Of a stretch of DNA of 64,000 bases, positions 52,901 to 60,743 are shown piece after piece. Position 1 is the stretch's first letter. Each line of letters opens with the position of its first letter. This DNA comes from Auanema rhodensis. Taxonomy: Eukaryota > Animalia > Nematoda. The stretch covers positions 12,152,001 through 12,216,000 of the forward strand of contig OZ059898.1 in NCBI GenBank assembly GCA_964057225.1, in the 5' to 3' direction. A program made the position numbers and the translations under genes. The notes beneath the pieces are model-generated. The model was not told the DNA's origin and did not search any database. It saw only the letters and a list, made by a program, of their open reading frames with translations.

Positions 52901-55900
52901 GAAATACACAGTGTTCTTTGTGAATGTTGACAAGCAGGCTTCATAATAACAATACAAGCACAATTCAGCCTGCCAAAGGAAGAAAATGCAAAGAACGGAA
53001 AGCGATTGCCGGATATGTGGCCAAAGAAATCTCAAAGAGGTATACGCCAGATTCTAAGTGAGAAAAAAAGAAAATCTCTCGTGATATTCTTGACTGGTAG
53101 TCTAAATTATTAAGCTCCGATCTATTTTCAGAACCTCGCAGCATAGAAGCCATCATCGAATGATCCGAGACTGCTATCTGTTACGGGATAGCAATCTCCT
53201 ATAGGTTGCTCGTCGTCTTCATCATGGAAGAGATTCAATTCATCGTCGGGAGTAGCTAAGTTATCGTCAAGAAATGCTTTGTCAGAATTGTCTCCGTCTT
53301 CTTCCTCTTCGACATCAGTAGTCGAGTCGTCAAAATCGACATTATACTTTTTTCGAATTTGACGAATGGGGTAATTACGAAAAACTATGTCAGAGTCGGA
53401 GTCCGAATCGAAAGGTACCTAAAAGATGTAATAGTTGTAAAGCATGAGAGCAAGAGAGAGCATGAATAACCTCTTCAGGTTCGGGTAAAATGAAGAAATC
53501 ATCTAAGTCTATCCATGTCACAGACTTCTCTTGCTTCGTTTTTTTACTTGCAGTAGGAAGTATCTTACTATAAGCTGCGGAAGGCTTAATTTATCAAAAA
53601 TAGAGTTACTTAAAGCCTTACCGTCGTGATCTGCTATGTCCGGATCATAATCCGAGCAGATCGAAGGCAAGATACCAATTTGATCTGCTGTATGGTGAGC
53701 AAAACTAGTTTTAGATCGGAAAGGAATTTTTGCAATACAGAGCAGAAAATAACAGACGAGTGCAGAATATTCAGCAGTCACTAAAAGGTCCAGTAGCTAG
53801 AAGGACCAGAAGCTATTTGCTGGAGTTACAGCCAAACAATTATAAAGCACGAAAGGCGTTGGTGTTCATATGAACACTAAATGAAAAAATCACGCCCTTG
53901 CCTCTCTTTTCTCTTGCTCTCTCCTTCGTCCTTCTATGCATGTCATGATGACTTGTGGCAACCCCAAGCGACAATTATTTCTGTTGTACCTCTCTATAGT
54001 GTATTGCACGCTGGGATTTGCACAACTCATAGATCAAGCTAACAGCTTGTTCCGCCTGGTTCGTCATCAGAAGGTATTTAAAGTCAGTGTCCACCTGCCC
54101 GATTGGCTTGAATTATATGATCTGGGTAAGATCATTCAAGTGCTACATTGAAAGACAGGAGGAAACATATATGTAAAAGTTTTTTCAGATTAGTTATATT
54201 CTATTTTAAGTCCTTCTTGAATAACAACATTGATTGAGACATTGAATTCAACAAAGAATAATGCGTAATGCATTAATATAGAAGTGCATTCCTGCAGAGT
54301 TGAGGATGGGGAAGCAATTTGAAAAAAATTTGCATTCTTCTGAACATAAACAGAGAGGTGGAAATCAAAATAAATTCGCAACCTCGATCAGCGAACTACT
54401 GTAGCGAGAAATCAGGTAATATTGTTTTTGTTGTTTTTTGGGTCATGTTTAGAAGTGGGTAGAACAACAAGCATCTCGCTTTTAGGTCTCTCCAAGAGTT
54501 TTCAATAGGGAGCAGCATGCTGCCTTACTCATGAAACGACACCCCATGGAGATACACCACCTACACCACAATAATTTATAAAGTCCCTTCAGGGTTTTCA
54601 TATAAAGTTAATATTGGATTCAAAAAAAAAGGAATGATTGAGACAAAACTTATAAATCTTCCTCAGATGCGGCTCTTGATGTAAAAGAACTTTTACCTAT
54701 CCGGACTATCAATTATTTGATGTCAAAAATTAATGAAACCGACAACAAAAAATCCACCGTAGTAAGATCCGTAAGGCTTTCTGATTTAAAGAAAAGGAGG
54801 AGCATATCAGGAAATCGGACACTTGCTTGATATGTAAAGTAAGGTTATATGCATATGAGTGTATATACGATTTTGAAAAGTAACTAGTAAATCACAGAAA
54901 GCCAAGAACATTGAATTTCTCGATTGGCCGGTCTTCAAAGAAGTAACCGGAAAGAATGAACTAAATAGAAATGAACAGATAACTTGTTGCTCACTTGAGT
55001 GCTGCAAGTATAGGATGGAAATAGCAGACGTTCTAGATTTTCTAGATAGGAAAAAAGCTTTTAATACTAGGTAGCCAAGACATTGGCATTACCTGCTTTG
55101 AGAAAGACAGACAGACAGAATCAAAAAGAGTGGGGCAGGACATATAGGTCCAGTTATACATATACGGCAGTAGAGCCTGAATACTTTCCGAAAGGAAACT
55201 AATCGAGCAAAAGAATACATGTTACTGAGAGTTTGTAGAAAGAAAAGGGCAAGAATAATCATGAATAAAGTTAAGGAAGTATACTCACAATGAAAAAGGT
55301 AAAACCTCAAATTTTGAGATTTATACAATTAAACTAGGAAATTAAAAATAATGAAATTAAAAAAACTTACTCATCTCGTACTCGCAAATGACGATCCTTT
55401 TTTTTGGAACTCATCTGATTGTACTTGGACATGAGATTCAGATAGCTGACGTTATCATATAAATCAGAATCAAACTGAAAATGTTAATAATTTCAAAACT
55501 TTCAGAACTGCTATTATGGATACGAACATCATCAGGACTCTCCATTCTTCGAAGTGTTTCTTCAATTTCCTTTTCTTCTTTTGTAGTTGTTTCGTCGTCC
55601 TTTGTTGTTTCAGTCTTTCGAACAGTTACGCGTTTCTATAAAATAAGTTCATAAACAGATTTTGTATAATTGGATTATTAGCAATATTTCAACAATTATT
55701 CTAAAGTTGTAGATAAATAGAAAAGTACTTGTTCAAACTTAGGATAAGCCATAAAGTTATTATAAGCTAGCGGAATTTAATAAATGTCAACCTAACTCTC
55801 TGTTAGGGAGTGAAGCCCAAAAGTCAGATATCTGACATAGCTGCCTATTTAAGGCTAGCATATTGAAAAGAAAATGAGCGAAATTGTTAAATTTAAGTTT

Positions 55901-58439
55901 AATATTAGATTTACCTTATCCTAATCAACGTTTTTTAATATGCAATAACTCGAAAAGAATGAATGGCCTACAGCATTGAATACTTGAAACCGTTCAATTT
56001 GTAGCAAGGATAGGGAAGCCAAAGGTTTGAGTACAATGAGGCTAAAGGTAGCAATACAGAGTAGGCTGGGCAAGACAAAGACTGAATATAAATCGTTTCC
56101 GATATGGCCTTTCCTCGTCCCCGGCTAATTTACTTGTAATAGATCTGAACCTTGATATTCTTAAAAATATACGAAATGCTGGCAACAAGATTATATAAGC
56201 TTTGCGAACATCATCGCGCACTTTAAAATTTAAATTACTTTCAAAGAAAAATGTTACTTAAATATCGAACTATACGAAATTGAACAATTATGAGTACGTT
56301 TTGAAATGCAACCGCATTGTGCATTTAGTCAAAGAAAAATGAAACGATTTTATGGAGTTACGTGAACCACGTGAACTAGAGGAAAGTTCAGACTTGGACT
56401 TCTAGTATAAGAAGAATCAAATCAACTTAAGAAACTCTGAGCAAAGTTAAAACATGGGTTAATAATAATTTTTTCGCTCAGCCAACCGAAAACAATTAGA
56501 ATCCCACATCTGCTATTGTTTCGATTATAATGATAGTTGCAGGAAGTATAAGCAACGAAGGAAGTAAAGTACAGAGTGCAAAGGTTTTCCCGGAAGACGC
56601 TAGCAATGGACGTGAAATTGTACAGTTGAAGAGCTTAACTTGATTCAATTTGAGCTTTGAACTAAACTACGCAAAGTTTACGGAGGAGAACAGATTGTTA
56701 CAATTGAGACAACTTGCATGACTGTACTATATCAAGGAAAACACAAATTGTAAAGCTTCTAGGAATATGCCAAAAGGTTGGAGATCTAACCTGACCACAT
56801 TGCCATTCCAGAACTTTGTCTAGACGATCGGTTTGAGGCTGAAGCTGCTCCCAAAATCGACGAGAAGCGAGATGGCGATCAACTTGAGCAGCATACATGG
56901 ATATGCCAGTTCAAGAAGAAACTGCCAAATTTCTTGATAGAAATTTCTTTTTATGAACCTGCTTTTAATCTCGCCAATATCCGGTTAGACTCTCAAATAA
57001 GTTTTATTCCTAAGTGTGGAGGTGTGCTAGTCGAACTTTCAAAAGCAATAGACCGGCAAAAGGTGTCAATCCCTTGTCGCAGGAAGCTAGCCTAATTAGC
57101 CGTGAAAATCTGCATGGTATTACTAAGTTGAAATAGAGTTGAACAATGAAAAAAGTCTAGCAATGGCAAGTAAAGAGGAAGGAAAAAAGAAAAAGGAATG
57201 TAAACAGCTGTAAACCTTCTCTGATCCATTTGTCGAACTAGAAGAATCAGTCGATTTTTTATTACTCATCTGATTTTCATCTGAAGAACCCTTCTCTTCA
57301 TATAAGTCATCAGCTTCTTTTTGACGATCATTAGAGCACTTTAAACAATCACGTTTCATAGCCTATCGTAAAAACTTTTGTAATATTTTCCGAAGCGAAA
57401 TTAACGAAATTAATGGACAGGTAAACGAGAGAAAAAAAACAATGAAATATATAGAAAAAAGTTATAAGCTCGTTTCAAGCTCGTTTATACTTAACATTAA
57501 AGCTATAAAAGATGGAAAAAGGGCTTAAGTAGGGGAACAAAGGACATCAGAAGGCGGGACAAGAAAAAATACTATTGAACTTTCTTTCTACGTCTGTGAG
57601 CAATATTACATTTCAAGTGGTTCTAATAGAAATGATATAAAATAGTATAGTCGCCGTCGAAGACAAAACATTTTGGTTCATAGAAGTTAGGGAAAGGTAA
57701 AGCTCATGTCATATGTCAACCAATATATGAGTGTAATTAGAGGCATTTATACTCCAAAAGCATTAATAATGAGGTACCCTTAGCTTATTGCAAAAAATAT
57801 AAATCACACATAGTCCCAGAGAGCTTTCCTTCAAAAATATTGACATCAAGATTATACCAATATGACTTATAAGCTTAGTGGTCATAATGAAGACAAATTG
57901 AAAAAAAGTTGACAGATTTTTCAGCTCAGCATTATAATTAATGAATAAGTTACTAACCTTATAATTAAGAAATGGTTGAGTAGCATCACATGATGTACAT
58001 GTCATTTGTCCATCAACCGTGGAAATCATATTGGATTGATTTGCACCACATTCCAAACAATCAGTTCGTATAAAACGACGATACTCCTGAAAAAATTGCA
58101 CATTAAAACCATAAAAACAGAAATTATTGAATTTTGAATTCTATTTTCATGTCTTGGTGTACCCGTTCAGATTAGAACATATCGATAAAGGAAATGAGTG
58201 GTAGGAATAAACTTATATAATAGTGCACCAACTTCTTCTAAAACTGATTCTTCTCTGGTTTCAGTTAACATAGATTTCCGTTCTAGATCTTTAGAAGGAG
58301 CTTGTAAAGCAGCTAAATCAACGTCTACATCATCTTCGTCGTCGGAACGTGGAACAGAAAACGAAATGGAAGAAGCATCAGAGAGGTGGCGAGAATACTG
58401 ATAATTCGAAGGCAGCCGACTGGTCTTCATTGGGGTCAT
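49969..58439 (-). CDS. twnk-1: Twinkle mitochondrial DNA helicase (SF4, T7 gp4-like); possible further exon 58651-58746
   Basis: [41 protein letters not shown] (Walker A), TLFCSFEM (H1a), [10 protein letters not shown] (Walker B), [20 protein letters not shown]; degenerate TOPRIM region; Zn-domain exon 57958-58086 (CLEC..CTSC) joined in phase via 57216-57362, 55528-55635, 55371-55474 to the exon starting at 52743. Helicase part secure, 5' joins inferred. Confidence 0.85.
53128..54560 (-). CDS. Six-exon coding chain nested on the same strand in Twinkle intron 52744-55370 (nested gene or alternative 3' end)
   Basis: Exons 54529-54560, 54383-54398, 53990-54106, 53622-53796, 53471-53574, 53128-53418 join in phase, 735 nt, with a single terminal TGA; acidic tail and KSVTW motif. 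The last two exons are strongest; the two tiny exons are weak. Confidence 0.6.
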
Positions 58440-60743
58440 CTAGCTCATTCGACGACGTGTCAACTAGTAGCCTATAGCAGTTGTCATAGCCAACTACGAC
58501 GGCAGGCTGCTGACACAAGCCTAAAATGAGAGCAAAAGGGCTTTCAAGCTCGGCCCAGGTAGTCGTGTGGAGTTGGTTTGTCACTCTATTCGTTTACTAG
58601 CGTCTCCAAATACACAGTGCTATCTAGTGTTCAACACTAGACTGACTTACAGACGATGTGAACGTCAACGACGACGATGCCAAGCGTAGAGAAGTCAAAA
58701 CACCAATACACAAACAGGGCTGCTGCTGTGTTGTATTGGCTGCCATATAAGAGCAATCATCGTCTGGAATGTAATGTGGTGGAATAAGAAGCCGGTACCT
58801 ACACCATTACCAAACACGATGGCACAATCGCTCAATATCCCACGAAAACAAAGCCGAACTAGTAAGCACAATTTCAATTGCATTAAATTGGATGCTCTTG
58901 AGTTATTTTAAACCCTTTATTTCGAGCTTTCCGAAAATTTGATCTTTCAAAGTAATGTTTCAACTCCTATAAGAAAAAGGCAAAGGCAAAATGAACACAA
59001 CTGATCAGTAAGCGCTACTCACATCCTGAACAGCAGGGTCTCAAAAATCTCGAGAAGTCAAATTATAGCGCAAGAATAGGTGGTTACAACTACTCAAAGA
59101 AACAAAAACCCAGTAGCACGTTAAGGGTTAGATGAAGACTACAACTCGCCTCAAAATGAACTTTTTTATTGCTCAGACCATCCCAGCTTTTAGACATCAT
59201 TTCAGAGGTTGATCCATCTATACTACTCCTACGAAGAATCAAACTCATGGTGTACCTAAACCTAAGCAAAAATTAAAACACAGAAGCCGTACAATGCACG
59301 TTAACTGATTAGCTAATCACTCAAGAAAGTCAGTTATACATTTTTAAAAGATCAATTAACTTCAAACAGAATCAATTATAAGAAGGCAAACCGCAAGGAC
59401 CGTTAAGGTATAAAAAATGGAAGAGAACCAAAATCCGTGCTTACTGGGTAATTATTGTTTGAAGGAAAGTCTTAAGGTAATAACATCCATGAATATTTCC
59501 GCATATGACAGAAATCTAATCCTTTTTGATGGCTTAGCAGAACTACATCTGCATATAGCTTCCAAAATATTATGTTGTACGATGAGCAAAACAGATCACT
59601 CAAATATCTCACTAAAGCTAAAGCAAAAAAAAGTAAAAACCTACGGTATCAGAAAATTTAATAGAATTTTCTTTCAGGTACTGTATTATATCTGTCCTGG
59701 TAGGAATCAACTGTTCTGCTTCAGCATCTACAATTATCCGTTCCAGAACTGTCATGCTTTCATCCATATCTCTTTTTTTTTCTAACTCCTAAAAAAACTG
59801 CTGTGCAAGCATTACAAATATTCAAATGTTACCACTTCTTCTAGGAAAGATGACAACCCTCTCGTGTTCATATACTGCAAACATCTTGGTTTCACATTTG
59901 AATTTAGCAACTAAAAAAGGGAAAAATAATTTATTGCGCATATGTAAGCTTCTAAGATCAACCGCTCATCAAAATCATTTAATCGTAAATAATTTGAGTT
60001 TTGTGGTTAGCTTTTCATGTTGTATCACCTCGTAATCTATTGTTCTATTAGATGTGTTAGGAACATTTCTTACAGCATAACAGAGTGCAAGTTTCAATCT
60101 TCTCATTGGCAGACCTATGCTAACACTAAGTTCTAAAATCCCAAACTGACATCAGTATCAATCGCAAAAAACAAATCACGAATTACAAGTACGAGTATCA
60201 CAGTTATTTATTAATCCGTTGTAATGATTTCTATCCGCATACAACTAAACACAAACTAAACGACGCGAAAACAGCAGCACCGTGAAGCAAGGCTCACAAA
60301 ATCAGTTTAACAAGCTGATTATTTGTGGTTTACCATGAAAATTCAAATATATCAACCAGTAAATAGAAAACAGTGATCTCAAAAGACCCAAAACATTAAA
60401 CTGTAACACAGGAAAAAGCAGAGAAGGTCGAGTTTGATACAAAGACTATATACTAAAAATATTAAAACTAATCTTTCTCCGTTTACAATTAAACATCTAG
60501 CTAAGAGATCTACATAAATATTCTTAAAAGGATAAAAATGTTAAGCAGATCTAGGGAAAACTCTAGATGAAAAATGAAACAATTTGAAGTGATCTCTGAT
60601 GGAATGGTTTGATGTAGCATAATAATGAAATCATAAATGTTCGGCAGAATATCCTGAGAAAACAATGCTATTTTTACCGGAGGTAGACTTTATATGATCG
60701 AAATGCTCTAACAGTTCACCGAGGACTCTGTATGGATTCGCAG

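Follow-up and report, generated by a model that had tools for sequence, protein, structure and literature searches.

Three in-frame UAG codons at the Twinkle locus of the nematode Auanema rhodensis: probable untranslated-leader stops in a conserved alternative first exon

The gene of the mitochondrial helicase Twinkle in Caenorhabditis elegans, twnk-1 (F46G11.1), produces isoforms E1 and E4 from alternative first exons with separate promoters, and the two differ in 40–50 N-terminal residues; both are required and they are not interchangeable (bioRxiv 10.64898/2026.06.10.731382). C. elegans TWNK-1 is a mitochondrial protein without a canonical presequence (bioRxiv 10.1101/497305). In this study, we describe the corresponding gene in another rhabditid lineage, that of Auanema rhodensis, within a window of 64,000 nucleotides (assembly GCA_964057225.1, contig OZ059898.1, positions 12,152,001 to 12,216,000 of the forward strand) to which all coordinates refer unless another locus is named. 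A sequence-only reading of this window had pointed to three in-frame TAG codons ahead of a Twinkle reading frame, and had proposed that A-to-I editing or readthrough of these UAGs gives the protein a long presequence. Two classical systems are relevant to such a region. Upstream open reading frames (uORFs), as in the GCN4/ATF4-type leaders and in the minimal form of an AUG followed by a stop, are a means of translational control of eukaryotic mRNAs, and hepatitis delta virus provides the example of ADAR recoding of the Amber/W type, where UAG is turned into a tryptophan codon. In A. rhodensis it is highly probable that the UAGs are not recoded, and that they are stops in untranslated sequence, namely the leader of a conserved alternative Twinkle first exon, here called exon 1b, where an internal promoter and a uORF-bearing leader would give rise to an N-terminal isoform. 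Alternative first exons of twnk-1 are already known in C. elegans; what is new here is that there are three of them, that one is trans-spliced to the spliced leader SL1 and has a conserved GC donor, and that the leader of another is more conserved than its own coding DNA.

The RNA data consist of assembled contigs from one study with four samples (X1, X2, X3, and X4), and their spliced state identifies them as RNA. In these contigs exon 2 (58086–57958) is the common acceptor of three different upstream exons, named 1a, 1b, and 1c; the joints seen are 59150/58086 (GC-AG), 58233/58086, and 59645/58086, and thus mutually exclusive 5′ exons are joined in RNA to one and the same acceptor. The TAG region is located within a 1.56-kb intron (59644–58087) of the canonical transcript, which passes through exon 1c. 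Contigs colinear with the genome nevertheless represent exon 1b, extending over 58232–58559 in X1, up to 58553 in X2, and up to 58520 in X3, and the X4 contig covers 58284–58502. Above these ends there is no coverage up to exon 1a, the stretch 58560–59148 being empty in all four samples; contigs as such cannot mark transcript starts. The long presequence proposed earlier depended on an exon at 58746–58651 spliced to the TTTTAG acceptor at 58520. Its letters were read correctly: the stretch translates on the minus strand into the 32-residue peptide reported and is followed by GTAAGT, and the frame from 58520 does contain TAG at 58496–94, 58466–64, and 58442–40, the last directly before the ATG at 58439. 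The splicing itself found no support, however, as no contig in the four samples lies over the proposed exon, none carries a splice joint at 58520, and those of X1 and X2 continue through 58520. The A>G differences between RNA and genome that editing would leave were also not seen, since the contigs of all four samples show the genomic A at each TAG and have no differing letters, rare variants being beyond the reach of contigs.

Conservation was assessed against the nearest sequence, locus L005 of Auanema sp. JU1783, in which all pieces of the gene are present in the same order (Table 1). The two species have reached saturation at synonymous sites, the proportion of synonymous differences (pS) being 0.55–0.84, and third-position identity amounts to 0.31–0.67 (0.45–0.67 in well-conserved exons). 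For the exon 1b open reading frame (ORF) the proportion of nonsynonymous differences (pN) is 0.09 against a pS of 0.81, and the substitutions at codon positions 1/2/3 number 8/7/38; these values, together with the high amino acid identity at saturated synonymous sites, mark the ORF as protein-coding and under purifying selection. The other open frame of this region (58584–58378), held out earlier as a possible conserved coding frame, was rejected, for it lacks an ATG, JU1783 shows stops and a frameshift in it, and the coding signature is that of the main frame. At the DNA level, window positions 58807–57953 align with L005 5309–6151 at 73% identity, with 80% in the leader (58559–58440) and 74% in the coding part. 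The 250 nt upstream of the leader are 72% identical (L005 5306–5565), a block of 30 nt where the exon 1b contigs begin (58569–58540) is perfectly conserved, and of the remaining intron only short blocks can be aligned. The leader shows another pattern of substitution than the ORF, with 6/9/4 by codon position over 58520–58440 and 5/4/1 between the AUG at 58487 and the main AUG, the reverse of the coding pattern; its 80% identity at saturated synonymous divergence marks it as constrained, yet not as coding sequence. The frame of the proposed exon at 58746–58651 is broken in JU1783 by two 1-nt insertions and by TAG stops, and the first of the three TAGs is TAC in that species, with a 1-nt indel just upstream.

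The other two TAGs close uORFs that are situated within the transcribed leader and conserved in position. In JU1783 the 7-codon uORF keeps its start, stop, and length, with 3 of 7 residues identical, and the minimal uORF is kept in place as ATG ATC TAG ATG. As an alternative to recoding, three in-frame uORFs had been suggested from the sequence; these two stand, whereas the third, beginning with MAAN, is untranscribed in the four samples. A second in-frame AUG at 58430, downstream of the main AUG at 58439, is also conserved. That three TAGs share a frame is not beyond chance: among dinucleotide-preserving shuffles of the 81 nt, at least three TAGs occur in that frame in 6% and in some frame in 16%, and at least three in-frame stops of any kind in 25%.

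The leader is predicted to fold stably. The 60-nt hairpin at 58516–58457 folds as it had been described, only 3 of 200 shuffles being as good; the 91-nt stretch 58520–58430 reaches −32.8 kcal/mol (z −2.98), and a small 6-bp hairpin over the third TAG and the main ATG −5.6 kcal/mol (z −2.15). The orthologous stretch of JU1783 folds otherwise (−18.4 kcal/mol, z −3.39), and the leaders of both species fold better than shuffles (z −2.4 to −3.4). A conserved hairpin was rejected, as none of the stems spanning a long range is retained by RNAalifold and compensatory pairs between the two species are absent. The earlier statement that hairpins cover the UAGs is correct in that the folds exist, but the adenosine is within a stem for the first TAG only; the second TAG is mostly in an internal loop and the third is in the loop of the 6-bp hairpin. 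The features that would suit recoding are that both uORFs share the frame of the main ORF and keep their AUGs and UAGs in JU1783, that the leader is strongly conserved and structured, and that low-level editing lies below what contigs can reveal. In that event translation from the AUG at 58487 past the UAGs at 58466–64 and 58442–40 would add 16 residues, including the basic LTRRR, to the exon 1b protein as a minor product, so that one mRNA would yield two differently targeted forms of exon 1b Twinkle and the conserved leader would serve the switch. Against this, the encoded peptides are poorly kept (3/7 and 3/5 identical), the fold predicts no pairing for the adenosines in the two conserved UAGs, and the stems are 6–8 bp long and differ in JU1783, so there is no conserved long duplex around an adenosine to be edited. 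Stems of this length are short for ADAR.

The host gene is identified by homology as the nematode Twinkle gene, a twnk-1 orthologue on the minus strand. In searches made exon by exon, the Walker A segment (51465–51328) matches AAA_25 (E 5e-6) and DnaB_C (E 1e-4), domains of P-loop helicases of the DnaB_C/AAA_25 type, and the segment 52002–51784 retrieves 25 homologues with E down to 7.5e-29. PF03796 and PF13481 are both present in the full-length homologues, which come from many nematodes and go under the names SF4 helicase, twnk-1, or Twinkle, and the best of them is a protein of Auanema sp. JU1783 (about 64%). The primase-like N-terminal region is colinear with other Twinkle proteins: exon 1c aligns with residues 47–83 of the nematode Twinkle protein P0014, directly before the match of exon 2, and its motif TR(S/T)(E/D)(I/V)...L...I.F is common to the alignment of nine other nematode Twinkle N-termini and the JU1783 locus. 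Because the N-termini of other nematode Twinkle proteins match exons 1c and 2 in order, the canonical N-terminus is placed upstream, and the presequence is probably encoded by the chain 60106–60029, 59910–59833, and 59788–59645, located 1.3–1.7 kb upstream. A separate X1 contig also spans exon 1c, and its 77 loose letters stop at the acceptor 59910. The start of the chain at 60106–60029, exon 0, contains four Lys and Arg residues and no acidic residue in its first 20 (none before residue 24), is amphipathic, and has a hydrophobic moment of 0.68, the highest among the three alternative starts; it is probably presequence-like and the canonical first coding exon. BLASTP of the exon 0 peptides from the two species gave no alignment, and their likeness, seen by eye only, consists in equal length, phase, and position together with a common start of the form M-basic-basic-L-K-x-A-L. 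The premise that a presequence had to be gained by recoding thus falls away, for upstream exons already provide a presequence-like start, and C. elegans TWNK-1 is mitochondrial with no canonical presequence at all (bioRxiv 10.1101/497305). This Twinkle does not need stop codons to be recoded in order to have a presequence, and a false lead is removed.

Table 1. Coordinates of the 5′ exons and leader elements of the Twinkle gene in the A. rhodensis window and of their counterparts in Auanema sp. JU1783 (locus L005).
Feature	Sequence	Coordinates	Strand	Description and basis
Exon 0, probable canonical first coding exon	window	60029–60106	-	26 codons; GT donor 60028; ORF and donor read, junction inferred and not seen directly
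Canonical exon 0b	window	59833–59910	-	26 codons; loose letters of X4 and X1 contigs past 59789 match the sequence from 59834 up
Canonical exon 1c	window	59645–59788	-	48 codons; TRT(D/E)I...L...I.F motif; joint to 58086 in a 2449-nt X4 contig
Exon 1a	window	59150–59261	-	SL1 trans-spliced at AG 59263–62; ATG 59248; 33 codons; GC donor 59149–48; X1–X3 contigs join to 58086
Conserved block without transcript contigs	window	58560–58810	-	contains the proposed exon 58746–58651; RNA contigs and JU1783 alignment
Exon 1b 5′ leader	window	58440–58559	-	at least 120 nt; contigs; 58559 is the minimum extent, true start probably slightly upstream
60-nt hairpin in leader	window	58457–58516	-	−24.6 kcal/mol, z −2.72
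7-codon uORF	window	58464–58487	-	ATG 58487–85 to TAG 58466–64; in frame with main ORF; read from sequence
Minimal uORF	window	58440–58448	-	ATG, one codon, TAG; stop abuts main ATG; read from sequence
Exon 1b coding part	window	58233–58439	-	69 codons, phase 0; ATG 58439; GT donor 58232–31; spliced to 58086; joint in X1, X2, X3
Exon 2	window	57958–58086	-	zinc-finger motif of the Twinkle N-terminal region; contig joints; homology to residues ~70–150 of nematode Twinkle; 91% identical in JU1783
Exon 0	JU1783	L005 4086–4163		26 codons; annotated gene start
Exon 0b	JU1783	L005 4296–4367		24 codons
Exon 1c	JU1783	L005 4416–4559		33% amino acid identity
Exon 1a	JU1783	L005 4933–5034		50% amino acid identity; TTTCAG acceptor two bases before ATG; GC donor
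Exon 1b ORF	JU1783	L005 5686–5892		81% identity over all 69 residues
Exon 2	JU1783	L005 6018–6146		91% amino acid identity

The scenario that we propose for exon 1b starts from the canonical intron, where the conserved block at about 58560–58810 would act as an internal promoter, its probable role, with transcription beginning close to the ends of the contigs. The resulting transcript would consist of the leader and the 69-codon ORF spliced from 58233 to 58086. Two of the TAGs would do no more than close the small uORFs, the UAG of the second touching the main AUG, and the uORFs together with the stable fold most probably repress or modulate how the isoform is translated. The protein would exchange the canonical N-terminus, with its presequence and conserved helix motif, for a start that is rich in Ser, Thr, and Arg and then acidic. 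The leader, which is more conserved than the adjacent coding DNA and bears the two uORFs, is a compact candidate for a translational-control element of a mitochondrial helicase isoform.

This arrangement is like that of C. elegans twnk-1 in that alternative first exons of the same gene family change the N-terminus, and it suggests that the N-terminal isoform diversity functional in C. elegans also exists, in another form, in the Auanema lineage. It is unlike it in that three first exons feed a zinc-finger exon that is absent from the C. elegans proteins P0060 and P0065, which begin at the level of window exon 3/4, and in that exons 1a and 1b lack similarity to any Caenorhabditis protein retrieved, the isoforms being known here from sequence and RNA contigs. 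With the GCN4/ATF4-type leaders it shares short uORFs in a conserved leader just before the main AUG, the last stop being adjacent to the start, whereas the uORF peptides here are not conserved; this likeness is drawn from general knowledge and from sequence. The resemblance to the Amber/W site of hepatitis delta virus is confined to UAG codons near base-paired RNA, while the contigs show no A>G, the stems are short and unconserved, the upstream frame is unconserved, and JU1783 lacks one of the three UAGs. The canonical animal Twinkle (TWNK) is matched by the upstream chain, with its basic acid-free, presequence-like start, TR(S/T)E(I/V) motif, and zinc-finger region; C. elegans TWNK-1, as cited above, is mitochondrial without such a presequence.

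Among the other explanations, an unlikely one that survives best is that transcripts with exon 1b have a regulatory role or are unproductive, the uORF leader leading to nonsense-mediated decay or the promoter interfering with the canonical one, with no functional 69-codon product. Two uORFs and a stable fold ahead of an AUG whose context is poor (T at −3) would agree with this, but the purifying selection on the frame of the ORF argues for a translated product, and exons 1a and 1b have about the same contig depth, although depth is poorly measured from contigs. It is rather improbable that 58560–58810 is a non-coding 5′ exon, spliced from 58651 to 58520 in unsampled tissues or stages, so that the leader of exon 1b would be longer and spliced. 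The block is conserved, JU1783 retains what may be a GC donor (GCAAGT), along with an AG displaced by one base, and the X3 contig terminates exactly at the TTTTAG acceptor, with no extra letters, for which coverage or a minor spliced form may be the cause. The absence of contigs over 58560–58746 and the two contigs reading through 58520 speak against it, and so does the would-be intron, whose 3′ half is the best conserved part and includes the perfectly conserved block at the contig starts, which is un-intron-like. Recoding of the UAGs, whether by A-to-I editing or by programmed readthrough, is hardly credible, because transcription, the letters of the RNA, the conservation of the frame, and the premise all stand against it.

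Several points also weigh against the reading of exon 1b as an internally promoted, uORF-controlled first exon. The end of the X3 contig at 58520 is one of them. The RNA evidence consists of assembled contigs instead of raw reads, and transcript starts, strand, and rare forms or variants are beyond their reach. The leader hairpin is stable yet its predicted structure is not conserved. At 80% identity each uORF survives by chance in about 1 of 4 cases, so that retention in JU1783 argues weakly for a function. Exons 1a and 1b were not detected in the Diploscapter, Heligmosomoides, Necator, and Mesorhabditis loci, and the conservation of exon 1b is therefore seen in one relative; finally, the junction of exon 0 is an inferred one.

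Further searches of the region gave the following. In the genome of 181 Mb, exon 1b with its upstream sequence (58233–58760) and the conserved block of 30 nt each occur once, and an origin from a repeat or mobile element was not found. An Rfam scan of 57900–60200 with E up to 1 gave no family, a tRNA scan of 57900–60300 gave none, and Pfam gave no meaningful match to the peptides of exons 1a, 1b, 1c, and the proposed exon. A homologue search with the 69-residue exon 1b peptide yielded no candidate, a result that is uninformative as only proteins of 38–120 residues were eligible.

The gene model is corrected to three alternative first exons, one of which, exon 1a, is SL1 trans-spliced and followed by a conserved GC-AG intron. 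The X1 contig of exon 1a bears 8 loose letters beyond 59263 that, combined with the AG, correspond to the final 10 nt of SL1, which joins SL1 to the 3′ splice site in RNA on a short match of 10 nt only. The donor of the intron is GCGAGT at window 59148–59149 and GCAAGT at the same place in JU1783 (L005 5035–5040), and by this comparison the GC-AG intron is conserved between the two species. At least 1267 exact SL1 copies exist in the genome, and the canonical 22-nt SL1 recurs about every 252 bp in the tandem array at G000:C3:6741531-6768501 and beyond. Between exons 1c and 1a there is an intronic block of 86 nt (59448–59533, minus strand) that is 83% identical to L005 4656–4741 while the flanking intron is unalignable, and this block may serve exon 1a as a control element.

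Automatic gene prediction leaves Twinkle split or truncated in the relative. In JU1783 it is annotated as two genes (L005 4086–8596 and 10001–13596), and the annotation of Diploscapter pachys divides it likewise (L002 3022–6979 and 10001–14441); in both cases one gene model takes the N-terminal part and the other the helicase part, the latter beginning in exons corresponding to the region 53131–53590 of the window. The Necator americanus model (L007 6001–8265) is almost intron-free, with 716 amino acids in 2265 bases, compared with a gene of about 10 kb here. The region 53131–53590 (minus strand) is part of the annotated JU1783 Twinkle protein P0050, with a stretch of 20 residues identical, and a counterpart is contained in P0059, a twnk-1 isoform of C. 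briggsae, where the DLYDRVSYLNL and SDAPSPR exons flank it. It looks like a set of alternative internal or 5′ exons of Twinkle, not a separate gene.

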